From NCBI GenBank assembly GCA_946965045.2, contig OX337229.1:3410001-3474000 (forward strand): a DNA stretch of 64,000 bases, read 5' to 3'. The DNA is from Epithemia pelagica (Eukaryota; Protista; Bacillariophyta). Below the pieces are notes generated by a model. That model made no database searches, was not told where the DNA came from, and saw only the letters and a program-made list of their open reading frames with translations. The translations under genes and the position numbers were made by a program. Positions 5,422 through 59,228 of the stretch are shown here, in pieces (the stretch's first letter is position 1; each line of letters begins with the position of its first letter).

Positions 5422-6269
5422 TGTCTATTCTACCCCTGTACTCATTACTCATACGAGGACAAATCCTCATATGAGTACACTTTCAAAAGAAGAATATCAA
5501 ATCAATCATGTACTCCTAAGTGGTTTTTAAGTTCAGATTCGTAATCTCCATACTTGAAAACGTACCCCGTGGTATTCTCATGGTTTAATTGTGATGAGTA
5601 GTGACGATACAGTATCAAAAACAGAATTCATCCATGTTGGAGCGATGGTGATTTTCTAAACTGAGTGTTTGGAGGGGATAAAACAGAAGACAATCAACCT
5701 GATGAGTGTTATTATCCCTAGTGATGATGACCAGTTGTCCTTTGCCTGATTGAGGCATCAGATTGAGAGAATTCAGCCAAAACAAGCCTCCATCACCACA
5801 GAGGAAAATTCTGAGACCGTAACAGCATTCGACACCAATACAGGGTCAAATGCGGCGTCTGAGCCTCCTGCACCCCAACAGTTCATGTACAGAAAGCACA
5901 GACACCTTCAGGGAACCAGGAAAGTGCAGTGGGAGACTCAAATCCGCCAATGTATGTGAAGACAGTTGATTTCCCTCGACAAAATGGTTGGATTTGCCCT
6001 ACATAAACTGGATGGATGCATTTTCCAACACACGTAGTGTCTTGCCACATAAACATAGAACATAATGGTTGATTGTGGTCTATTACTTTTCTATTTTAGT
6101 TGTTCATTTTTTTGGTAGAACGGCAGATTCCCATGGTTGGGTTACATTTTTTGTCGATAGCTTCGTACAAAAGCTACTATGGTCTACGTAGATATGATTT
6201 TAGTAGGATTGTCCTCATATGAGGACAAGCGCTGTCCTCATATGAGGACAAACCGGGGTAGAATAGACA
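5422..6269. mobile_element. Non-autonomous DNA transposon, 848 bp, CTAG-flanked
   Basis: Perfect 15-bp TIR TGTCTATTCTACCCC at 5422-5436 and 6255-6269. CTAG on both sides (5418-5421, 6270-6273). Subterminal CCTCATATGAG(G) motifs at both ends. Confidence 0.85.
6209..6251. repeat. Tandem palindromes TGTCCTCATATGAGGACA x2 (subterminal transposon motifs)
   Basis: 20-bp perfect palindrome at 6209-6228, second copy at 6233-6250, and related copies at 5437-5479. Confidence 0.9.
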
Positions 6270-6711
6270 CTAGTGTCGGTGAGCGTTTTGTTGTTCCATG
6301 CCTTATGCGTTCTACACCCATACATACGCTCTATTGCCCCAATGCCCATTCTCTCAACCCCTTACCAGTTTACCTTACCAAGGTTACTAAGGCTACAGTC
6401 GTACTCCTCTACTATCCTCTAGTGCCTCCTCTCCGGGTGTGCCCATGACGGGCGAAAACGTACCGTTGGGCACATGTTTTCAACTAGGAATAACTCGATC
6501 AATATTGGCCCTACGACAGTGATCTGATGCATCTTACCAATCTTCAATGCATCCTCTGTCACCATTTGATGCTCCATTTGGCCTACATAGGACATATGGG
6601 GGTCATAGGAGCGCCTCTATTAGAAGCTTGTGGTGTGTGCAACGTGTGTGGGCACATTATGGGCACATTATAGAAACTCATGTAAAGCTCGGCTTTTAGA
6701 CTTACTACGTC

Positions 6712-7329
6712 CTAGTATTCGAACTTGTAGGCAACACTTGGCTCCTGAGTCTCAGAGAACTCAAAGGACAGGTTGCTATCGACACCAATTGACGAATTGC
6801 GCTTTCCAAATTTGCTGGACAAGTTGTCCTTGGCTGAATCATTTTCATTATTGTCGTCATCAAAGTTGCTTTGCATTTCCACGGACTTCTTTACAGTATC
6901 TGAACATTGCTGATTGTTGCATGATGTCTCAATGTTCTTGAAGTGCATCGTCATCATCAAGTCAAAGCAAGGGGGGGACGGAGATGAGGACAACTTCTTC
7001 TCGGGTGCTGGATACAAAACAGCAACATGATTCTTCTTGTGGACAATCTTGGCATGCAACGTCTTGGCTTCCATATCCTTGAGATCTGAAACGTCCATCG
7101 CCACCTTTTCCTTTGCCTTCATGTTCTTTTTCTTGGTTGCCACTGCCTTCTTAGTTTTCGTCGTCGTCTTTTTGCGATGCGACAACCGGGACGCGGGTTG
7201 GTTGGAAACGGAAACAGAAGGAGCAAGAATGGAGCTTGTGGACAGCGAAGCTGCATCAGCTCCTGAGGCCGCTTTGATGCGCGCTTGATAGCGCAAACTT
7301 GTACGACGGCCGTTGATAGTTGTCGACAT
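6712..7329 (-). CDS. Transposon cargo ORF-A, 205 aa, Lys-rich, unknown function
   Basis: ATG at 7329 lies directly behind the duplicated upstream cassette. It has the same ATGTCGACA start context as the CRD-only gene. Confidence 0.5.
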   Translation of the reverse strand: MSTTINGRRTSLRYQARIKAASGADAASLSTSSILAPSVSVSNQPASRLSHRKKTTTKTKKAVATKKKNMKAKEKVAMDVSDLKDMEAKTLHAKIVHKKNHVAVLYPAPEKKLSSSPSPPCFDLMMTMHFKNIETSCNNQQCSDTVKKSVEMQSNFDDDNNENDSAKDNLSSKFGKRNSSIGVDSNLSFEFSETQEPSVAYKFEY

Positions 7330-7576
7330 GGTGGCTCTTTGTGGTGGTGTAACAGGAGATCCACGGAAAATATGAGGCAGATGTGGGTCGTGTCGGTTGG
7401 AATAGGTTCCGAACGGACCAAAAGTCACGCCAGCCAACAAAAATTTTCCTTAATTAAGAAGTGCGCCATGAGGCGCGAAAAACTCGTCCATGCCCGCCCT
7501 CACATATCTCAAAACGAACACATAGAACTAAAGCAAACAAGAACAACAAGTTCTGTGGAGTAGTGTAGTGCAGCAC
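7320..7576. promoter_or_regulatory. Duplicated upstream cassette, copy 1 (putative promoter/5'UTR)
   Basis: Near-identical to 9261-9529 with only small indels. Contains TTTCGCGCC (E2F consensus) at 7472-7480 on the minus strand. Confidence 0.6.
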
Positions 7577-7584
7577 ACATCGGG

Positions 7585-8502
7585 GTGCCGTACGGGCCAA
7601 GAGGACTTTGGCCATCCTGGCCACGAACCTTTGGGTGTGGCCGCGGACGAATAGTAACTGGTTCCCACCAAGGTGGATTCTTCTTCTTCGCCTTCATTGC
7701 GAATGATGGCGGTGGTGCGGCCAACAATCTCGTCATGCTCAATGTTCCCGTGGTCAAACCCAAAATCAAGGAAATCACGTCGCTTGGTGTCGCCTTTTGT
7801 GCCGGATTGGCCACGCGAGTTTGGGACAGTGTCGATGAAATCAAAACCTTGTGGGCCGTGTCCCAAACCTACCTGCCCCGCATGACGGAAAAGGAACGAC
7901 ACCGCAATTGGAGTGGATGGAACAAAGCGGTTTTGAAAAGTCTGGGGTGGATCGATCCCGAAGACGAGGAGGAACAAGACCGACAAGAGACTAATACGAG
8001 TACCGCCCGAGTGGAGCAATTCACCCGTGACAATCGGAACCGGTTCCTCCAGAACTGGTTTGGTGCTGGCTGGCTTTTTGGAGGCGTCGATGTGGTTGCT
8101 GCTCATGACCGAATGACTCTTGTCATTCTTGGTTGCCGGAATCGCCTTGTTCTTGATGGGTTTCTGTGGCACTTCTTGCCGCAGACAAGACGGCTGTGGT
8201 GTCATCAAACGACTCTTGTCGTTGATGTTGTCGTGGTCGTTGTTGCGGCTGTGGTGCTTCTTGGTGACTTGGACGTCGTTGTGTCGGTTGTGGTGCTTGT
8301 TGTTGTGGTTGGCGTGCCTTGTTGGAGGAGGAGACATGCGCCAATTCGGCAGCCAATATCATTTGCTTGGTATCCTGATTTTCTTGAAAAAAATTTTGCG
8401 CCAACACATCGAGAGTTTTTCAAAGAGTATCTTGCGTTCGTCTTCATTCATGCCCGTGGTGGAATAGGACGGAACTTGCTGGACGACCCCTTGATCGTTT
8501 GA
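7585..8502 (+). CDS. Possible transposon cargo ORF-B; strand uncertain
   Basis: 305-aa plus-strand ORF overlaps a 269-aa minus-strand ORF (7528-8337). The poly-Val stretch looks like the antisense of CAA repeats, so the real coding strand is unresolved. Confidence 0.25.
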   Translation: MPYGPRGLWPSWPRTFGCGRGRIVTGSHQGGFFFFAFIANDGGGAANNLVMLNVPVVKPKIKEITSLGVAFCAGLATRVWDSVDEIKTLWAVSQTYLPRMTEKERHRNWSGWNKAVLKSLGWIDPEDEEEQDRQETNTSTARVEQFTRDNRNRFLQNWFGAGWLFGGVDVVAAHDRMTLVILGCRNRLVLDGFLWHFLPQTRRLWCHQTTLVVDVVVVVVAAVVLLGDLDVVVSVVVLVVVVGVPCWRRRHAPIRQPISFAWYPDFLEKNFAPTHREFFKEYLAFVFIHARGGIGRNLLDDPLIV

Positions 8503-8712
8503 CTTGGCGACACTCTTGGTATTACTTTGGTGGGCCACCTTTTTGCCTATGTCAATTTCAATTTGGCAATCAAGAAATTGACTATGTAGATATCCTTAAA
8601 GTTCGAACTGTATGGATGTAACTTCAAATAGAACTATGTATTGGTCTTACCTAATCATGTATCGTGTATTTTCATTTTCATAGTACTAAATCATAGAGCA
8701 ATCGTCGTGAAA

Positions 8713-9270
8713 TCAAGCTGTGTTCTGTTGTTGCATTCGGAATCTGTGCTCCTCAACACAGGTGCGGTTCATCCCAGGACGAATCCTGTTACCGTTGCAT
8801 AGTCCAATACCTTTGGTGGTCTTGGTCTCGTCCGTTCCCGGTACCTTGCGGGTCTTCGTTTTAGCAAGACAAACAGGATGTGCGCAAATTGCTCTCGTCT
8901 TCATCAAACAGATGACGCATCGACGTGTGCGTGGTCGTTCGTTGCCATCCGCATCCTGGACTTGTTCGGGATTTGGCATGGGCCTGTGAGACAAGTGAGA
9001 CAAGAATCCAGCTGGCGGATCTCCAGAGTGGCAAAGAAGACACGACACAGTACCATCATCCTGAACTGTCAATGACTCTGCTGGGGAAACACTGGGGAGC
9101 GAATCAACAACTGAAATCGGAGGGCATCTGCTCAAGCCAGCACCAGCAGTTGAGGCCCCGAACTGAGCCATAACAGCCTCCTCCGGCATCTTCTTCGCGT
9201 ATCGCATGGCCTGTTCTGTAGGCGACTCAGCGTCGACGACATTGGAAGCAATATTGGGGCTTGTCGACAT
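8713..9270 (-). CDS. Stand-alone paralog of the transposase C-terminal Cys-rich domain (CRD), 185 aa
   Basis: Aligns with the last ~200 aa of the transposase (CVIC/CAIC, CAHPVC/CGHPAC, LCNGNRIR/ICNGNRIR, CVEEH). Has its own ATG and a duplicated 3' flank (8585-8712 vs 10222-10350). Confidence 0.85.
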   Translation of the reverse strand: MSTSPNIASNVVDAESPTEQAMRYAKKMPEEAVMAQFGASTAGAGLSRCPPISVVDSLPSVSPAESLTVQDDGTVSCLLCHSGDPPAGFLSHLSHRPMPNPEQVQDADGNERPRTRRCVICLMKTRAICAHPVCLAKTKTRKVPGTDETKTTKGIGLCNGNRIRPGMNRTCVEEHRFRMQQQNTA

Positions 9271-9529
9271 GGTGGTCTTCTTCTCTTTTGTGGCGTTGTT
9301 GTTCCTGTAACAGGAGATCCACGGAAAATATGAGGCAGATGTGGGTCGTGTCGGTTGGAATAGGTTCCGAATGGACCAAAAGTCACGCCAGCCAACAAAT
9401 TTTCCTTAATTTATTTAGAAGTGCGCCATGAGGCGCGAAAAACTCGTCCATGCCCGCACTCACAAATCTCAAAACGAACACATAAAAAAAGCAAACAAGA
9501 ACAACAAGTTCTGTGGAGTAGTGCAGCAC
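9261..9529. promoter_or_regulatory. Duplicated upstream cassette, copy 2 (putative promoter/5'UTR)
   Basis: Near-identical to 7320-7576. E2F consensus at 9432-9440. Lies between the divergent CRD-only ORF and ORF-C. Confidence 0.6.
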
Positions 9530-9648
9530 CCATCGACAGACATAGTAGTTCTTTGGTAGAAGCACGACACGACGGCAAGTAAGTAAACAATGCTGTTAAA
9601 ACCGTCTCTCCAACAAGCACTCACACTTTGCATCAATTGTCCGGCAAG

Positions 9649-10227
9649 ATGAATTCAACGAAAGGAAGCAAGAGGTTTGAGACGATGAAACTCGTCAATG
9701 GGTTCATAGTGGTTTGCGATGGTGGCCAAAAGCTTGACACAAAGGGGGAGACAGTGACAATGTTTGGAGAAGCGGGGGTGAACGTGTACATGAAGAGTGC
9801 TGGAGAATGTTCTACCGATGGTCGGTTGATTGTTGATCGTGGTGTGTTGCTGTTGCAACGAACTTATTTGTCTCGAGTCAACACGAATGCAGTCTCAATT
9901 CGCTTCTTTGACAGGACCAAAAAGGATGATTCTGTCCCAGAGCTAGTCATCCCACTGCAATACATCAACAATCAACTTGATACAACGATTCTTCAGTCAA
10001 GTAGTGGCAAAGTTGTCAAGAGCAAGATCGTGATTGCTACGACACACTCACTTAACACCGTGATGACAATGGAGCCCATGGTTGTCACGGTTAAGATGAG
10101 TGTCGTTGGAGCCACGACGTTTCTGAAACTTCTCAACGAGAAGCTTTCTAAATCTGTTGAGGGAAAGGACGATGACAAGACTGTCAATACGGTGATCAAG
10201 AAACTGACTGATCCTATGCCTTTGTAG
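9649..10227 (+). CDS. Transposon cargo ORF-C, 192 aa, beta-rich, unknown function
   Basis: Clean ATG-to-TAG ORF with normal globular composition, convergent with the transposase. Confidence 0.6.
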   Translation: MNSTKGSKRFETMKLVNGFIVVCDGGQKLDTKGETVTMFGEAGVNVYMKSAGECSTDGRLIVDRGVLLLQRTYLSRVNTNAVSIRFFDRTKKDDSVPELVIPLQYINNQLDTTILQSSSGKVVKSKIVIATTHSLNTVMTMEPMVVTVKMSVVGATTFLKLLNEKLSKSVEGKDDDKTVNTVIKKLTDPMPL

Positions 10228-10350
10228 GATATACTTGTAGTCCGAACTATTGATGTAACTTCAAATAGAACTATGCATTGGTTTTACCTAATCATGTATC
10301 GTGTATTTTCATTTCCGTACTAACAAGTTCATAGAGCAATCGTCATCAAA

Positions 10351-13300
10351 TCATTCTGTTGTTTGTTGTTGCATCCGTAGAATCTCCATCTGGATTCTAT
10401 GCTCCTCAACGCAGGGGCGTTCCATGCCCTCCCGAATTCTGTTCCCATTGCATATACCTACACCCCGAAGGATCTTGAGTTCCTCCGTACCCGGGATCTT
10501 TCGGGTCTTCCTTTTTGCAAGACAAGCAGGGTGCCCGCAAATAAATCTTGTTTTCATATTGCAAATGGCACATCGACGCGCACAAGGTCGTGCCTTGGAA
10601 TCTGCATCGACGCTTGTGTCTGGATTGCGGATTGGTTGGTGAACGTGAGTGGGAGGAACTGACGGAACGCCAGAGTTGCAAGGAAGGCACTGGGATGGGA
10701 GAGAAGAAGCAGCATCAACTTCAAGCACCGACAATGATTCTGATGGGGATACAATGGGGTGCTCTGTGGATTCCAAATCAACGACCGAAATTGGAGGACA
10801 TGATCTCAAGCCAGCAGCACCGCCAACAGTGGAGGCCCCGAACTGTGCTATTAAGGCCTCCTCAATCATCCTCTTTGCATATTGGGTGGCCTGTTCTGTG
10901 AGAGACATGGGCTGCTGCTGGGAAGCACCATCGACAACATTTGATGCAGCAATATTGGGATGAACCTGTCCTCGTGTGTTGACATTGTTGTTGAATTGAT
11001 TGTGGGTAAGATCCCACGCCAAACAATCTGCAAAATGCTCAACTCCTCCCGAGACAGGTTTCTGTTGTGCGCCCAAATGAAACTTCGTGGCAAGAAAACA
11101 ATCAACCACAGTGGTGCCGATGATTGTTGAGATCAGCCGAAACCATGGGTTTGGCGTTTTCCAATGCATCTCAAGACGTAGCACACCTTGTCGAAGATGG
11201 TTGTGCATGTCAATGAGGTTCGCCGCCCTAAAGTAGATTGACAAACATCTAGGCCGTAGGACGCGGCGCTCTCGTACATTGCCATGTTCATCCGCATACC
11301 TGGCTACGTATGGCAAGCCAGGCTCCGTCGTTTCCGCATCCCTGGACATTGCAAACAGCAAGGTCTTCTTCGAATTGTACTTGTATGCAATGGCAACCAG
11401 GTTGACGTTGGTTCCTGGTGCCATGCACTCCATCACCAGGTACGCCCCAGATGGAAAGTTCTTCATCTCTTTCTTAAGTTGCGCATGCGGGAAACAGCTT
11501 GTGTTCGATTTGATGGAACAGATGCATTCTGGTGATAGTGGATTGTTTCCCCGCTCTTTGTCTACGCACAGGGCGTATGTCCGAGGATCGCGAGCCGTTG
11601 GTGCTCTTGGTTCTCGGTACATGCACTTGAGCGACTCAACAAGCTTGACGCTTCCGAACCAAGAGTCAGCACAGACGAGAGACCGCAGGCTCCCTTGATT
11701 CTGTGCTTCGACTCGCTCCAACACTGCCTGACCCGTGTACTCGGAGCCCTCTACCAAGCGAAGCGATGTACCTGCAGTCGGGCCGGCCTCAGGCATGAAT
11801 TTCTTTTTCCGCATCGGGACCTTCCCTTCCTGTATCTCAAGGAAGAGAAGACAACCTGTTGCTGTGTCACCAGACACCTGTTGAAACAGAACAGAACAAA
11901 ACAAAACAACAACCAAACAGATGAGTTGTTGTGCACAATGGTCAGAACCGAACGCTCAAATCATCTCCCTACCTTGAATTCGGTGCCCAGTGGCTTCGGT
12001 TTGCGCTTAACGTATGACAGGTGCGGGAGTCTCGACGTTTTCGTCGTCCTCGGTTGAAACGCACTCATGGCCTCATCCAATGTGATGGTCGACGAGGCAG
12101 CAATGGTCTTACGGCGGTTGTTGTTGAATCCACTGACCAATGGCTTGATCTCGTTCCATTTTTTTCCGCGTTCATCGCCTTCAAAGGCATGAGGAAGCAC
12201 CTCTTTGATGTCAAAGAAACGCGTCTTTGACATCACGTCCATGCCAGCTTTACTGGCGTTTACCTTTGGTGAGAACTGCCGACGCGCCGAGCCATCATCA
12301 TCAAAGAGACGAATACCGCCTTTGTGGCATGGGGCCGCTCCGATGATGATCCCCCAGAATGCCCACCACTCATGCTCGGTAACAGAGCGGAGATGACGGC
12401 TCCGGACTCTGCCTTGGTTGCGCTCGCTGATTGCTCTATTCAACTTATTAAGCTGATCTCTCCAACTCCCTGTCAACAAGCAAGAGAACAACGTGAGAAA
12501 CCACTACAATCACCATCTGAGGAAGCGATTTGGGACACTCGACAATCAACGAATTACCTGGCCATAGATGGATCAACAGGCGCATAAAAGGGAAGTCATA
12601 TTGTTGGTTTATGGTTGATAAGTTTGAAGCTGAGAATGACTTGTGGAAGTCAAAGCCAATCACGCCAACCTGTTCAAACTCTTCGACGGGGTTGTCAGGT
12701 GCTATGTCGCCGTCGACAATTTGCCACTTGAACACACGGTTGTCGTGTATCTTACGAAGATCATTCCTCCCCGTAAGTCCCAGTGTCTCTTCGTTGTCTC
12801 CATCAAACAACACATCCCACAGAGGTGTACCGGGAACACTGTCGGGGTGTTTCCCGGTGACCACACCAAAACGTGGATTGTGTTGTTTGTTTTCGCGGAC
12901 TCTGTCCCCAATCTCAATGCAATTTTCTGTAGATGCCGCGATGTCCACAGTCCAGTTTTCATCAATCAGCTGATTCTTCCTTGTAATGTACCTCTCATAC
13001 CTGCGGCGATGCTCTTGTCCGCTCTCAATTTCATTTGCAAGCGCAAGGCTGTTCGGATCGATGGCATCGTCATCATCCGAAAACAAGAACGGGAAGTCTT
13101 CCGTGTCGTTGAAATAATCGTCCAACGACACGTCGGACACATCGTCCTCGTTGTTTGTATTTTGTTGGGTCTGGCCTGTCTCCCCAATTCCATGGATGCT
13201 TTGACTGTTGCTGCTCAATGAACCGTCGGACAGGATTGTCTCGACTGCTCGTTGGTTTCCATCAACTGCAGTCTGCACTGCCGGGTGAACAGTGTCACCA

Positions 13301-14070
13301 GCACTACTGTTGTCATCATCCATTGATTGTGTCGGACGGTTGTTGTTATTGATGGCTGGTTGGGCAGGTGCTTGCTGTCGTTGAGTTTCCGGACCACCAG
13401 TCACCGCAACCTGCAAATCGTTGTTGTTTTCATCCTCTCGTTCTTCAGCACGTTGTTGCTGGTTATTGTTCACCAATGGTTCTACTTCAAAACCCTCCTC
13501 CTCTTCTCCATTGTTCTCACTTGTTACAGCGGCGTGTTCTTGTGGTTGCGGTTGCTGTTGTTGGAGGCTGTTTCCATTCGGTTGTTGTGGCCGCTGGCGT
13601 TGACGACGAGCACCAACAACAACTTCGATTGCTGTCAAGTTTTCGTTCTCCTCGTTGGCTCCAGACGGCGTGGTGACGAGGAGGACCTGTTGCGCATTTG
13701 ATGAGGCCTCCATTTCTTGTTCATGTTGATCTTGCTCTCGTTGTTGTGGTTGTTGTTCTTGGGTGGCCACGTGAGTAGTTGTAGTGGTCTGAGGGAGCTG
13801 CTGTCCCTGCTGCTGTTGCACTTGTCGTGCTCCTGCTGCTGGACGGTGCGGCGCACGAGAGACATCTCCAGGGAATCTATCATCTTTAGTTATTTTTCGA
13901 AGCTGGTAAGACGTCTTGTGTAAGAGCTCACCCGTCCTGCTTCCATCCCTCATGTCGAGTAGCTCAACTTCCCAAGCCTTGCTGCCCCGAGCTTGCACAA
14001 TGATCACAGGTTCATTGCTGCCCCTGATGAAAGCCCTGGACCCAGGACCAAGCCGACTTCCTCCAGCCAT
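10351..14070 (-). CDS. piggyBac-like (DDE_Tnp_1_7-type) transposase, 3 exons (12558-14070, 11973-12469, 10351-11877), 1178 aa
   Basis: GT-AG introns 12470-12557 and 11878-11972 restore one stop-free frame (LWPG|SWRDQ; GTEFK|VSGDTATG). Catalytic motifs are TLDEAM, CADSWFGS and IDMHNH, plus KRKPKPLG and a C-terminal Cys-rich domain. Confidence 0.93.
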
Positions 14071-15116
14071 TCCTTCTTCTTCGTCGTCGTCTGTTTTGTC
14101 TTGCTCTTATCACTACCCTCGACACTGTCGTTCTCTCGTTGTCGTGTCGTCGTGCTCAAGAAATTGACACTTTTTGTAATGATTCCCATTACAAAAAGGT
14201 TCAAATACTTGAACGCAAAAATCTTCCATGCATCATCCCTCATCCAGATGTCCTGATGAACAATCCCGATGGGGACTGTTCAAATAGCACAAGAACATGT
14301 GTTGCCATTGTATGATTGTTGGATTGGTGTGTGTGTTCAAAATTTCGGGGTACATTTTTGTCAAAAACCCCGTGGGGTTCGCACTTCCGAATCAGCGCCG
14401 ACCTGGACACGCCAGGCCGGACATGGCCGGAACGTGGCTGGGAAAGTCGACCATGGGACAAAAAATGGCGCGAAAGTGTTGCAATGCATCGGCCAAGAAT
14501 GTCTCGACGTCTTATCATGGTCATAGGACTGTCATGCGACCTCCCATAATGGTGGGCCCACATGTGCCCAAGTGTCCCCAACTGTGCCCACATGCACAAT
14601 CACGGTGCACAAGCCCCTAATGGAGGCGCTCATATGACCTAGATATGTCATATATGGGTGTCATGGAATATCAAATGGTGACAGAGGATGTCTTGAAGAA
14701 AAAGTTTGAGCATCCACATGTTGCCGTAGGCCTAATATTGGTCATGTTCTATCTAGTTGAAAACATGTGCCCAAAGGGTCGTTTTGACCTGTAATGGGCA
14801 CACGGCTAGAGGAGGCACTAGTAGTAGGAAGCCTCCAATAGCTAAAATAGAGAGAGGAGTCTACTCCTTGTAGTTTGAGTACGAGGTAGATGAAGAAAGT
14901 GTCTCTAGAGTAGGTAGGCAGGTAGTAGGTACTTGCTTTTTGACAACGTCAGGCCACGTAGGCAAGCAGTTTGAAATCTGTTGAATGAAGTTTCTCACCG
15001 TTAAGACCGACCCTCATTACTCATTTTCTTACTCCACGTCTCTTGACCATGGTTTATTTGTGCACGAGTCTCGTGGAACTCAACTGATCAAGCAGGCGCT
15101 CAGAAATTTTATCGAA

Positions 15117-42308: not shown

Positions 42309-42530
42309 TTTCCAAAGGTTATCTAGCGATTCAAGCGCCTTATCGTTGTCTCAGGTTGTTACGTTAAAAAATGATCGGACTAGGTAGTATCCTTGACCAT
42401 GCGCTCTTGATGAGAAGATTGACTACCGTAGAACTCGTAATCAAGCAACGGAATTCTCTAGCACAAACATGAAACGGGAAAAAACGCGGTGTTGTGTCTG
42501 TATACGAGTACGAGTACGGCATACGGCATA

Positions 42531-44392
42531 CGAGCTCCATCAATCGATATGTTGGCGCTCAGTTGCCCGTGCTTTTCAGTTGCCCGTGCTTTTCAGGCCC
42601 CCACTGTTTCCTCTATAGTGATTCTAGCTTCGTAGGAAGAGCACTACGGTCATTTTGCACTGCATAACACCACCATGGACAACAAGAACCGCTGTGCACC
42701 TCCAACGAAAGGTGCTAGCACTCCGCCGACCATCCAGGAAGCTTGATCTTCATGTGTATTGTGAGGGAATGGACGGGAAGGGATGAGTTGGCTAGTTTCA
42801 TCGACCTACGGCAAGGCTCTGAAGTCTTCCAAATTTTGGGCTGGAAGGAAGCAAGGAGATGACAACGATTGGAGTCAAATGATGATGGGATGAACGAAGA
42901 TTGCGGGGTGGGAGGACATTGGAAGCTTTGATATAGCTCAATGAGGCATGGCAGAGTCGCGAAAACCGCTCACAGCAATCAGACGGATCGTTTCGACAAA
43001 AACAACAACAACAACAAACTCTGGCTTCGAAGGAACGACAACAACAAGCAACCCCTTACACAAGCTCTCTAAAAGCAACAACAAGAACAAGCAATATGGA
43101 TGCAACAACAAGTCATTCCAGGAGTGGATGCCACGAAGCTGCGGTGGCGGCTATCCGATCAAGTGGTCGTCCTTCTCCTTCTCCCTTGTGTTCGGAAAAC
43201 TTTGTGGCACAACAACGACACCAAACAACAACGCAACAATCAAATGCGCTATGTTTCTTTTGGTTCCACAGTTCTACAGCCCAAACGAGGCAGAGCGGAA
43301 ACAACAAGTAGCGACAGCAACAACGAGCGGTGTCAACGACAAAGACAACGAATGGCGACCATCACAACAACACCATACTCAACAATTCACTCCTCGTTCC
43401 GGCTGTGCCCTACAGCAAGCGGCGACAACGACATGCGACAAGACAGCAAGCGGCAACAACGACAAGCGACGACAATGACATGCGACAACGCGACAATCAA
43501 CTACTCGCTGCCGCCGCACGAAACTCTCGACAACCCCAATGCAACAATCAACTACTCGCTGTCACCGAACGAAATACTCGGCGACACCACCGACAACACG
43601 CGCCGACGACAACAACGATAACAACACGCGACAATCAACTCCATCTTTCTCACGGCCTCAGCGAATCGAAAACTCGCATTGATTAGGGCAACAATCAAAT
43701 AGAAGAGACATGACCAACACAACAATCAACTACTACAATCAAATCCTTGGTTCGACAACAGCAACAGTCGCAGCCATCAAGCAAACAAAACATTCCACGA
43801 CAACCACAATCGACAACTAGATACAACAAGACAATGAAGACAACATGCAACAATCAAACTATAGTTCATCGTCTGTTTCTACTTCTCCGTCTGACTCGAA
43901 GTCTCCGTCCTCTCTCGCTCTCAGGATGGCATGGGCACCTCTGTTTCTTTCATTTCTACGGTTCTGCAAGAAACGTCAACGCCTTGTTTTTGCCGAACGA
44001 GACAACCCTGTGCCGCGACAACGACACCAAACGCAACAACGAACTCCTCGTTTCGGCCGAGTGAACCAATCCCCTATAACAACGAGGACAACAAGCAGCA
44101 GTGATGGTGGCAACCTAATATAGGCTTATCATTAGGAAGCCGTTTGTACAGTTTGATCTACTCGTAGTCCTAGTACTTTTACTTCTCGTACAGAAAGGGG
44201 AAGCGCCTCCACGTCATGGTGAAAGGTTCATCGGTAGGAGTGCGAGGTAACCTCACGAGAACATCTTGTCGATGTGGGGCAATTCGTTTTACTTTAGGAA
44301 AATGTATAGTGAAGTGAATCTCGTAGGGCCGGAAGTTTCACCGAGGTGAAGCACGGGCAACTGAGCGCCAACATATCGATTGATGGAGCTCG
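42531..44392. mobile_element. Non-autonomous Tc1/mariner-type element A, 1862 bp, TA TSD
   Basis: Perfect 44-bp TIR CGAGCTCCATCAATCGATATGTTGGCGCTCAGTTGCCCGTGCTT. TA at 42529-30 and 44393-94. A/C-rich minisatellite interior. Confidence 0.88.
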
Positions 44393-44561
44393 TACCCAGA
44401 CAGTTTCGGTACTCGGACTCATGAGGAAGAAGGATGAAGGTGCATGATACAATAAAACGGAAAAGGGGTACTCGTACTCCTATACTCGTACTCTTATTTC
44501 TCTGTAAGTGAAATAATCTAGTTATAAGTACTGTACGAGTATCAGCCAGCAGCCAGGCAGT

Positions 44562-44604
44562 CCCCAATCCCCCATCCCCAATCCCAATCCCCCATCCCAG
44601 TCCC
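44562..44604 (-). other. Potential G-quadruplex
   Basis: Seven G-runs of 3-5 nt separated by 2-3-nt loops on the minus strand. Confidence 0.6.
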
Positions 44605-44727
44605 ATGGAACCATAATTCAAGCCCTTCAATTAATTGCCCCCCTTTCAATCTTCAAGGAACGTGGACGAGTGGACGGTGGGCATAAAACAAATAAGAATA
44701 GTCACCACCCTTACGAGTACTAATCTA

Positions 44728-45668
44728 CGAGCTCCATCAATCGATATGGGTAACCGTAGTGGCCCGTGCTTTTCATACCCCCACTGTTTTTTCTACAGTG
44801 ATTCTTACTTCGTAGGGACACCACCACGGTCATTTTGCACTGCGTAACACCACCATGACACACTCAAGCCGGTGTGCACCTCCAACGAAAGGTGCCAGCT
44901 CTCTTGCGACCATCAAGGATGCCTAAGAATCAAGTGTACCGTGAGGGAATGGGCGGGCAGGGATGAGTTGGCTTTTTTTATGGACCGACGGCAAGGTTTT
45001 GAAGTCTTCTGATCGAACGAACGAACGAATGAACAAACAACAACAAAAACAACACTCGGCAACAACAACAACAACAACAACCCCCACGCAACAATCAACT
45101 ATTCGCTGTCACCGAACCCTCTGCCCGAGACTGTGCCCTTCAACAACAGCAAGCGGTGACAACGACAAGCGACGACAACGGCATGCGACAAGACAGCAAG
45201 CGGCAACAACGACAAGCGGCGACAACGACAAGCGACGACAGCGACATCCGACGACAATGACATACTCAACAATCAACTGCTCGTTTCGGCCAAACGGCAA
45301 AACATTCGGCGACCACGGCACGGCAACAGCACCATACTCAACACCGAAACGATTGCCTATTGTACGACCTACGACACAGAGAAGCATGTACTAAGCTAGA
45401 TAGATGTTCTGTACTAGTAGCTGTTTATATGCATACTCGTAGAGGAGGCGGGTTGATTATTGTGCTAGCGCCGCCTCACCATGGTGATGGTGTGGGTGCA
45501 GTTGGTGAGAAGAATCTCGCAACAAAATGTGCAAGAGAATGAGGGCAATTCATTTTACTTTAGGAAAATGTATGGTGTAGTGAATCTCGTAGGGCCGGAA
45601 GTTCAACCGAGTATCGGAAACGTGAAGCACGGGCCACTACGGTTACCCATATCGATTGATGGAGCTCG
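44728..45668. mobile_element. Non-autonomous Tc1/mariner-type element B, 941 bp, TA TSD; same family as A
   Basis: Perfect 44-bp TIR CGAGCTCCATCAATCGATATGGGTAACCGTAGTGGCCCGTGCTT. TA at 44726-27 and 45669-70. Subterminal blocks are shared with element A. Confidence 0.88.
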
Positions 45669-47499
45669 TACTAAGTAGCAACTAGTATTTAATTCCCAAG
45701 ACATTTTCTATTTTCTAGCTCCCTTGAAATTGAAAGTTGATTGATGAATGACTTTCTTTTTTCTTCATACAAAAATAATATTGATCATTGACCATGGACT
45801 TTACGGCACGGTGAGACCACGGATTGGTCTTTGGTCTACGAGTAGGTATTGAGAGAATCAGTCCGAGTTTCATCGGAACTTTGATTTTTGTGATGATTGG
45901 TACCATTGATCATGAGGTTGAGATTCAATCGGATATGGTTTATAGTTCACGGTGCATGATGCATGATACGGAGAAGCAGTTTGTGGCGTACATGGAGAAG
46001 TAGTATGCGAATAAAGAACACAAGTGAATGAGAACATCCGAAAGATGAACGGTAAGTGGGAGGAAAACCGTTGGGAAATGACGTGATTCGTGATTTTGCC
46101 CATGATCAAGAATTTTTTGAGTTGACAAGCCTCGTCAAGTTGGCACCAAATTATCAGCATTACTGAACAGGCATCAACGTTGATCTGAAATCTGAAATCG
46201 CATCAACGGAATCGCTGTTGTATCATTCCAACAGAGCATTGAAAATAGAAACCACTGATCACTAATCCGTAATCGAAGAAATGAATCGATGTATTCCAGC
46301 GAGGGATGTGTATCCGTTATCCGTTATCCGTTCACAAGCCATTCGATACCAGACATTCATCTCAGAACAAACATCATATCAAAAATTGGATCGCGAACTG
46401 GGTTCGAGAGACAAAAGTTATTACCCCACGACAGTACGAACCACTTGAAGCGAGGGAAGAAATAATAGGGAGTATCGATGCTGTTCCTCGGAGTAATAAT
46501 CTCTTACGGGATGTGGGATGTAACATTGCAAGGGAAAATAACGACAAACTCCATACTCCATTTGCCTGCTTTTTCTCCGAACACAGGAGTGTGCCTTATG
46601 ATGAGGCGTCTCGAAAATGAAATCCAAGATTTTAATGCCTTTAAGTTTGAGACAACCACCACAAAAGGGCAAATCTACGAACAGCTGCATTGAAAGAGAT
46701 TTCCTCTTCTGGACATTACATACGAGTGTGAGATCAGGTGGAGATTGGAGAGAACGATAGCAAAGAGTGTTTCATCCTCATCTGAGATGTTTTTGGGCTC
46801 ATTTTTTCAAAAAATGCGAAGGAATCTCCACAAACTAGAAAGTAGGGCGCAGGCGCAACCAGGGGTGGTCCACGCATGCGCTACAATAGCTATATAAATG
46901 TGCACGTGTGGAAGTAACGCAATCCCAGGCCCAGCCCCTTGTCCGCGACGCTGAATGCCACACACACCATCATCCCACCTGCCACACAAAAACTAGCAAA
47001 TTCATCGGATAGGAAATTTCGGACGAGAAGTCCGTGGTGGTAATCCGGCACAATATATGTACTTGAAAATTGGCGGGAAGGATCCGTTTTGTGCCATGGG
47101 ACTTCGATTCGCCTTGAAACCTTTAGGAGACCGCGTGCGTGTGCACGTGCATATGTCAGGCACGCGCTATTTTACAAGTAGGCCGTCCTATCGTCAGATA
47201 AGGTATGACATGGGATAGACAAATCCGGCGATACTTTGCTCCTGCCGACGTTCTCTTTTAGCGGCAGCGCATTCTCAGGAAAATTCTTTGTAAGCGCATT
47301 CTCAACAACAACAACAAACAAACCACACACAAGGCAAAGGAATGCCGAAAGAGAAGATCAACGGAAGGATGAACTGATGATTCATGCAAGCTTCATGGTC
47401 AAATAACGCAATCGCTAATAAGTTACTGAGTGGAAGGATAACTTGTTGGCTTGAATCAACGACCGAGACAGAAGTGAAGATAGCGCGGAGTGGACGACG

Positions 47500-58174: not shown

Positions 58175-58679
58175 TAACACGCTCGCGGTCAAATCAAACG
58201 ACAAAGCACAAATTGTGATACTCTATAATTCATCTTTGTCGACCCTGGGTGTGATTGCCTGTTGAGCACCCTTTCCCCTTTCCCTTTCGCCTCTCTCTAA
58301 AAAGTTGTTGGAAGTTGGAAGCCACTTTCAACCGCGACCGCGACGTCATGCCATGCGGGGAGAAATGCGAACATGGGCAATAATCTTTTCATCCAATGAA
58401 AGATTCCCGCCAGTCATCCTACGGTTACAAATCAGTTGCATTGACACGTACTTTATGAACAATACTAGTACACATTGTGTTATACTACTTATTTTGGTCC
58501 ACACACTTATGCTAGCGACATTCGTTCTTGTTCTTGCTATTATTTTATTGGGCACCCTGCAAATTTCGCTGATTGTTGTGATTGTTGTGCGCTTTTGCCA
58601 ACCTTTGTCGTTGTTCCACAGTTCAACAGATAGAAGCAACGAGTCAATCTGAAGGGCCTACTAACTACCCTACTTGTAG

Positions 58680-59097
58680 TGCCTCGTCTCGGGTTGTGCC
58701 CATTTCGGCCTAGAAACACCCTTTGGGCACATAGTTTCAACTAGATAGAACATGATCAATATTAGGCCTACGGCAACGTGTGGATGCTCAAAGTTCTTCT
58801 CCAAGACATCCTCTATCAACATTTGATACCCCATTGCACCCATATATGACATATCTAGGTCATATGAGCGCCTAGCCAAAAACCGAGCACAACCCCCCAA
58901 AGGAGGTGCTATGGAGGCACAGATATGTCATATATGGGTGCAATGGGGTATCAAATGTTGATAGAGGATGTCTTGGAGAAGAACTTTGAGCATCCACACG
59001 TTGCCGTAGGCCTAATATTGATCATGTTCTATCTAGTTGAAACTATGTGCCCAAAGGGTGTTTCTAGGCCGAAATGGGCACAACCCGAGACGAGGCA
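58680..59097. mobile_element. 418-bp MITE with perfect 177-bp TIRs derived from the right end of the piggyBac-like element
   Basis: 58680-58856 is the exact reverse complement of 58921-59097. Aligns ungapped to 14817 backwards with ~26 mismatches in ~194 nt by hand. Flanks are GTAG and CTAG. Confidence 0.95.
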
Positions 59098-59228
59098 CTA
59101 GCCCCGAGTTGTTTGCTCGTTGCTTGTTCGTAACCGCTCCAATTCCGGTGTTGCGTTTCAAGTCTCTTCAACTGGAAAGTCGTTAGGGAAACTGTAGATC
59201 GAAGACATCTTATAGCGAAAGAAACAAT

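Follow-up and report, generated by a model that had tools for sequence, protein, structure and literature searches.

The Element and Its Genes

The window analysed here (the whole stretch of 64,000 nucleotides of Epithemia pelagica DNA) contains a mobile element bounded by CTAG target duplications, and inside this element lies a small gene, designated CRD', that is related to the tail of a transposase and is accompanied by a piggyBac-like transposase gene and two accessory genes, ORF199 and ORF205 (Table 1). The inverted ends of the element begin with TGCCTCC, and the GGGCACA motif that they share has 18 matches in the window against 6.6 expected by chance. CTAG flanks all the full-length copies of the element that were recovered (in the window and at loci L001-L007 and L009), the typical piggyBac target being TTAA.

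TABLE 1: Positions in the window of the element, its genes, and the segments that make up CRD' and its surroundings.
Feature	Position	Strand	Remarks
Whole element with CTAG target duplications	6419..14821	-	CTAG at 6419-6422 and 14818-14821; element proper 6423-14817, 8.4 kb
Inverted ends, ~210 bp	6423-6632 and 14608-14817		Four GGGCACA motifs each
ORF205, Lys/Ser-rich accessory gene	6712..7329	-	Ancestral; donor of the CRD' start; L007 homologue 12797-13405
P-block, second copy of the upstream block	7330..7582	-	Directly 5' of ORF205
Filler segment U2 of the CRD' insert	7583..8578	.	~1 kb; holds the FGGY sugar-kinase fragment
Last ~45 residues of the FGGY sugar-kinase C-terminal domain	~7696-7812	+	Antisense to CRD'; Pfam FGGY_C
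Copied transposase 3' flank, now behind CRD'	8579..8712	-	~134 nt, matches 10217-10350
CRD'	8713..9270	-	185 codons + stop; codons 1-3 and part of codon 4 derived from ORF205, codon 5 onward from the transposase tail
Two-zinc Cys/His domain of CRD', residues 93-180	8731..8994	-	AlphaFold2 pLDDT >90
P-block', upstream block of CRD'	9260..9535	-	94-99% copy of 7320-7582 (ORF205 upstream block and start, ATG plus 8 nt)
ORF199, convergent ~190-aa accessory gene	9649..10227	+	Directly behind the transposase gene
3' flank of the transposase gene	10217..10350	-	Source type of 8579-8712
A-type piggyBac-like transposase gene	10351..14070	-	Predicted exons 14070-12558, 12469-11973, 11877-10351
Tail of the A-type transposase gene	10351-10962	-	Paralogue of CRD'

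The transposase gene is predicted to contain two GT-AG introns (12557-12470 and 11972-11878) with good consensus sites, fitting phases and an open frame, and splicing of its three ORFs would yield a transposase of 1,178 aa. Its second exon matches the Pfam family DDE_Tnp_1_7 (PF13843; E 6.9e-07), as does the C-type homologue. ORF199 was found in all four of the element families seen (A, B, C and the element at L008; L001:9146-9685, L007:11811-12386 and L008:8613-9214). It matches no Pfam family, and an Atlas search yielded just weak leads to C2-like domains. ORF205 is conserved across families at its start and in its C-terminal ~30 residues. The conserved accessory genes of the element family are ORF199 and ORF205, not CRD'.

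Derivatives of the element were also observed. The window holds a 424-bp foldback (58677-59100) with perfect 180-bp arms of element end sequence, and at L003:428-2027 an internal deletion has left a 1.6-kb derivative made of the element's first 1,240 nt and last 363 nt. A near-perfect 22-nt palindrome pair around TCATATGA (6206-6254) lies ~165 nt beyond the element end and is not part of the element. Self-comparison of the window further revealed a cluster of direct and inverted repeats with 82-100% identity at 42529-45671.

CRD' Is a Separate Copy of a Transposase Tail

CRD' shares 57% amino acid identity (E 1e-63) and 76% DNA identity with residues 320-520 of the ORF at 10351-11916 on the minus strand, and it aligns to the last ~200 residues of DDE_Tnp_1_7 transposases, both the parent gene and the C-type homologue. 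The homology begins past the catalytic region, leaving a tail without a catalytic part. These results confirm the earlier note's description of a 185-aa ORF paralogous to the transposase C-terminus and followed by a copied 3' flank, and they support its view that this is a separate, catalytically empty gene for the Cys-rich tail only. The gene looks complete, having a putative promoter block, an ATG, an ORF and a 3' flank.

Two parts of that description needed correction. An ATG is present as claimed, but it is not original, having been copied from ORF205 together with 8 nt of coding sequence and ~260 bp of upstream DNA. The gene is likewise related to the element's transposase, but its closest relative is not the A-type tail of its own element; it is the B-type transposase tail of sister copies, with which it shares 69% amino acid and 85% nucleotide identity. 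The copied flank shows the same affinity, being 94-96% identical to its B-type counterpart but only 88% identical to the A-type one.

Every length difference between CRD' and the transposase tail is a multiple of three, and five indels (-27, -3, -12, +9 and -15 nt) were assigned to the CRD' lineage itself. The Cys/His ligands C118, C121, C129, H131, C134, C158, C171 and H175 do not vary across 12 sequences, among them CRD', which also retains H95 and an upstream CxxC at 77-80; in all, 12 of the 12 family-invariant residues are retained. The pattern of frame-preserving indels, absence of stops and kept ligands (eight of eight) that had been reported from the sequence was thus reproduced.

The Predicted Protein

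Residues 1-92 of CRD' are predicted to be disordered and are acidic (pI 4.5), and the folded half, which was modelled with AlphaFold2 from a 12-sequence alignment, is basic (pI 10.1). A Foldseek search against the PDB gave no significant match. Exhaustive alignment with VIA-align returned just six chains with Z>=2, all of them weak fold matches; two are the CRDs of piggyBat (Z 3.0, rmsd 3.2 over 56 residues) and PiggyMac (Z 2.2), and the remaining chains are cross-brace zinc fingers. At the sequence level, comparison with Pfam (E up to 0.1) found no family and no piggyBac zinc-ribbon match for CRD', and a profile search of PDB sequences produced chance matches only, none of them to solved CRDs.

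In piggyBac, the CRD recognises repeats within the element ends, and transposition cannot proceed without it (PMC5861402). Not all CRDs of the superfamily bind DNA, since that of PiggyMac, which is acidic, does not (PMC8086355). The folded half of CRD' is basic like the DNA-binding piggyBac CRD and unlike the acidic PiggyMac CRD, and by this analogy binding of CRD' to the element ends is plausible.

Copies, Subfamilies and Distribution

The copy survey was made in one long-read ENA assembly and covered seven copies, the one at the window's locus and six more elsewhere. They lie at distinct sites with their own flanks, each between CTAG duplications, and all of them carry CRD'. The element carrying CRD' is recently active. 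The same arrangement on seven long contigs with different sites and flanks, its junctions covered by contigs of three DNA runs, makes it next to inconceivable that the duplicated tail is an assembly artefact or a collapsed repeat, even if short-read contig graphs join 10218 to 8600, so that both flanks confuse assemblers.

The copies fall into subfamily A (the window, L003 and L005) and subfamily B (L001, L004, L006 and L009). Between A and B the transposase halves are 56-80% identical and the cargo halves 94-99%, suggesting that transposase genes have been swapped on a common backbone. For instance, when 6419-14821 of the window is compared with L001:4569-12995, the ends and cargo are 92-99% identical. 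The break points between the two types fall close to where the 5' inverted end terminates and close to the stop codon. Within the cargo, CRD' itself is the segment best conserved from A to B (97.7-98.6%).

The CRD' ORF is open in six of eight copies. At L009:12264-16458 the CRD' module is tandemly duplicated, in what looks like an unequal exchange between two upstream blocks, and both resulting CRD' copies bear the same 4-nt deletion at codon 69, so that the frame ends before the zinc domain. The first transposase exon of L009 is split into two ORFs. In another B-type copy, a Copia-type retrotransposon (Pfam RVT_2; L004:11317-19698) sits inside the filler segment.

Outside these two subfamilies CRD' was not found. 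The family C element, L007:6125-13701, lies between CTAG duplications and encodes the transposase, ORF199 and ORF205, but it lacks both CRD' and the kinase fragment and contains just one upstream block; a fourth, broken element at L008 keeps ORF199 and lacks CRD'. An exhaustive search of 1.84 billion representative proteins recovered ten relatives in total, and among these representatives there was no stand-alone tail without a transposase body besides two short matches, one the final ORF of a disrupted transposase and the other a degenerate chimera. The ten relatives, the lack of any other stand-alone tail and the sister families without CRD' together point to a young, lineage-specific addition. 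CRD' is not a family-wide second component, as it is absent from L007 and L008 and frameshifted in both L009 copies.

Chimeric Origin of CRD'

The composition of the insert indicates how CRD' acquired its parts. The tail, its 3' flank and the filler with the kinase fragment form one insert, with a copy of the upstream block on either side. P-block' runs on into the divergent ORF199, and this contiguity indicates that the block upstream of CRD' has retained the original intergenic context. In sister family C, the coding sequence of ORF205 opens with the same ten bases (ATG plus 7), which identifies ORF205 as the donor and CRD' as the derived chimera. The FGGY_C match is clear in the L001 copy (E 9e-09) and falls to E 0.2 in the window, where the fragment has decayed.

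In the mechanism that we propose, the ancestral element would have had three genes: a transposase, ORF199 convergent with it, and ORF205 divergent from ORF199. A patchwork of about 1.9 kb would then have entered ORF205 at approximately codon 4, and 263 bp of target would have been duplicated, made up of the upstream block and 11 bases from the start of the ORF205 coding region. The patchwork probably held a B-like transposase's last ~181 codons together with the 3' flank and, after them, a piece of a host gene encoding an FGGY sugar kinase. Such an event would have placed the transposase tail in frame behind the original promoter region and start codon of ORF205, leaving ORF205 itself behind the second copy of the block. 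By construction, the 1.9-kb insertion and the 263-bp target duplication would provide CRD' with a putative promoter region, a start codon and a 3' flank. The module would subsequently have been carried by the element and exchanged between two subfamilies whose transposase genes are ~25% diverged, and the CRD' lineage would have lost the purifying selection typical of transposase tails. If translated, the product would combine a disordered acidic half with a basic two-zinc domain and have no catalytic part. It could occupy subterminal sites of the GGGCACA type in competition with the transposase, with no sign of selection for that role.

Placing CRD' among transduplicated chimeric genes agrees with two further observations. 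Foreign gene fragments (the FGGY_C fragment and the tail) lie inside the element ends and are co-mobile, as seen in the seven CTAG-flanked insertions, and the ORF uses a borrowed start and putative promoter, its upstream block and first 11 coding bases being those of ORF205. We judge it moderately probable that CRD' is a young chimeric gene that arose by one capture-and-duplication event in one lineage of a CTAG-targeting piggyBac-like diatom transposon, and that it is a by-product that may be transcribed.

Selection on CRD'

Compared with the A-type tail of its own element, CRD' has a dN/dS of 0.30-0.35 at a dS of 0.9. This pairwise value was rejected as a test of selection, a dS of 0.9 reflecting the old split of two working transposases, and the comparison, on which the earlier note's case for selection depended, mostly measures shared history as a working transposase. 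The comparison with the nearest, B-type tail gave a dN of 0.124-0.139, a dS of 0.117-0.142 and a dN/dS of 0.88-1.19. The dS against the B tail drops from 5' to 3' (0.25, 0.12, 0.05), indicating that the CRD' region is a mosaic or that its 3' end has been homogenised. A search for a donor among transposase lineages closer to CRD' than the B-type found just the A and B clusters.

Among the CRD' copies themselves, 13 nonsynonymous and six synonymous changes were counted together with one in-frame 3-nt insertion and the 4-nt frameshift (dN/dS ~0.8-0.9). The earlier note had listed a dN/dS near 1 among the outcomes that would refute its reading, and values near 1 were what we found, both against the nearest tail and among copies.

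A branch model was fitted to nine sequences with a GY94-type codon model that we wrote ourselves. The estimated dN/dS was 0.25 for the transposase tails, 2.4-6.2 for the CRD' stem and 0.80 for the crown (CRD' and B copies). Equality of the stem with the transposase rate was rejected (p=8e-6), and a stem ratio of 1 gave p=0.043; these p-values are rough, as they come from our own implementation, 177 codons and a recombinant mosaic region. The stem ratio, nominally above 1, could mean adaptive change instead of drift. Selection on the protein rather than decay is thus not borne out by the nearest-tail, stem or crown ratios, and no purifying selection on CRD' was detectable at any depth compared (copies, nearest tail, stem).

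The two accessory genes served as controls. ORF199 is under purifying selection, with a dN/dS of 0.13-0.27. For ORF205 the ratio is 0.16 at depth (against the C-type gene) and 0.7-0.8 between the young subfamilies, a difference which indicates that shallow comparisons have little power.

The indels offer another view of the CRD' stem. All five are in frame, compared with five of 35 (14%) in the non-coding parts of the same elements, and the chance of five out of five is ~1e-4 if all of them postdate the capture. Four of the five lie in the 5' part of CRD', where the synonymous divergence from the B tail is 0.19-0.25. The duplicated upstream block has diverged three to five times less, so the indels may predate the capture and have arisen in an unseen transposase lineage.

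Under neutrality, the chance that CRD' would remain free of stops is 0.09-0.46, with a figure of 0.09-0.26 for ~35-70 substitutions. Retention of the ligands was rejected as evidence of selection; with ten changes in the zinc domain, the probability that none hits one of 11 invariant positions is ~0.12, which is not significant. A relative-rate test counted 16 derived amino acid changes in CRD' and eight in the B tail, a difference that is not significant (p=0.15). The outgroups were too distant for polarising synonymous changes.

Competing Readings

The strongest competitor to the young chimeric by-product is a working regulator encoded by the element. CRD' would in this case bind the subterminal repeats and, having neither the catalytic nor the dimerising body, would damp transposition in the manner of the P-element protein KP or help synapsis; it would be young and under positive selection. 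We consider this unlikely, though it deserves serious attention. In its fullest form, namely that a piggyBac-type transposon made its own trans-acting regulator by copying an end-binding zinc domain behind the promoter of an accessory gene, and that this gene has been kept open, is adaptive, and tunes or assists the transposition of an autonomous element in cis, the idea is likewise unlikely. To our knowledge, no such arrangement is known in the piggyBac superfamily.

The by-product reading is disfavoured by the in-frame indels of the stem, the absence of stops, the retained invariant residues, a stem dN/dS nominally above 1, the standing of CRD' as the best-conserved cargo and its full set of putative expression signals. 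In favor of a regulator are five of five stem indels in frame over a 14% baseline, an ORF open in most copies, the retention of all ligands and invariant residues, a stem ratio above 1 at p=0.043 and the inherited promoter region of ORF205. Its domain is predicted to be folded and basic, two of its six fold matches are CRDs of the piggyBac family, and each element end offers four GGGCACA motifs. Precedents exist in the binding of end repeats by the piggyBac CRD (PMC5861402) and in the truncated P-element transposases that act as repressors (reviewed in PMC7776569).

Against a regulator stands the failure to detect purifying selection at any depth. The in-frame indels are mostly 5' and may predate the capture, the gene is absent from sister families and frameshifted in L009, and it was captured together with an obviously useless kinase fragment. 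CRDs of the superfamily do not all bind DNA (PMC8086355), and an ascertainment bias applies as well, since the ORF was noticed for being open.

At the other extreme, CRD' might be a relic left by a truncated transposase copy, silent, untranscribed and open by chance. A dN/dS of about 1, the youth of the gene, the frameshift in one lineage and the sizeable chance of a stop-free frame all fit such a relic. It would, however, leave the five in-frame indels to be explained, and CRD' lies exactly behind, and in frame with, a full copy of a conserved element gene's start codon and divergent promoter region, and it has retained the transposase 3' flank. We regard this reading as improbable.

The capture of a transposase tail as a by-product that may be transcribed remains the reading that we favor, and the locus has value under either outcome. 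Should the CRD' protein be made and bind the ends, a piggyBac-type transposase would have a natural competitor or helper encoded by its own element; an autonomous element would have acquired its own regulator by reshuffling its own parts, providing a lead for the control of piggyBac tools. If CRD' is functionless, it is a clean and datable case of diatom DNA transposons building chimeric genes, at a locus that also displays transposase swaps between otherwise near-identical backbones. In both cases a caution follows: dN/dS measured against a distant paralogue mostly reflects a shared past and says little on a new gene.

Comparison with Known Systems

Pack-MULEs are known for the capture of gene fragments by DNA transposons (transduplication). 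The element described here resembles them in carrying a patchwork of gene fragments, including one of a host kinase, between its ends, and in harboring a chimeric ORF with a borrowed promoter and start that has been amplified by transposition and whose evolution looks neutral. It differs in that the CRD' fragment is the tail of a transposase from its own element family and that the promoter was supplied by the element itself.

As a domain, CRD' is similar to the CRDs of the piggyBac superfamily in deriving from the C-terminal end of a DDE_Tnp_1_7 transposase and in having eight Cys/His ligands for two zinc ions; it is also basic, like the DNA-binding piggyBac CRD (PMC5861402), and its weak fold matches include the piggyBat and PiggyMac CRDs. 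Unlike them, it has neither a Pfam zinc-ribbon match nor a sequence match to solved CRDs, its domain is longer (~90 residues), and it is encoded without a transposase body. The element itself targets CTAG and not the TTAA of piggyBac elements.

Like KP of the P element, a repressor reduced to the site-specific DNA-binding part of a transposase (PMC7776569), CRD' is a transposase derivative with only a putative DNA-binding part, and by analogy it could compete for sites in the element ends. KP comes from non-autonomous copies whose single gene has undergone an internal deletion, and what it retains is the N-terminal THAP domain, whereas CRD' corresponds to a C-terminal domain and is a separate, extra gene beside an apparently intact transposase gene in the same element. 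In ciliates, the catalytic PiggyMac acts together with PgmL1-5, further piggyBac-derived proteins that are themselves catalytically inactive (PMC6143343), and CRD' would likewise be an additional, catalytically inactive piggyBac-derived protein. The PgmLs, however, belong to the host, retain the complete transposase fold and evolve under selection, whereas CRD' is borne by the element, consists of the tail only and evolves with no detectable selection.
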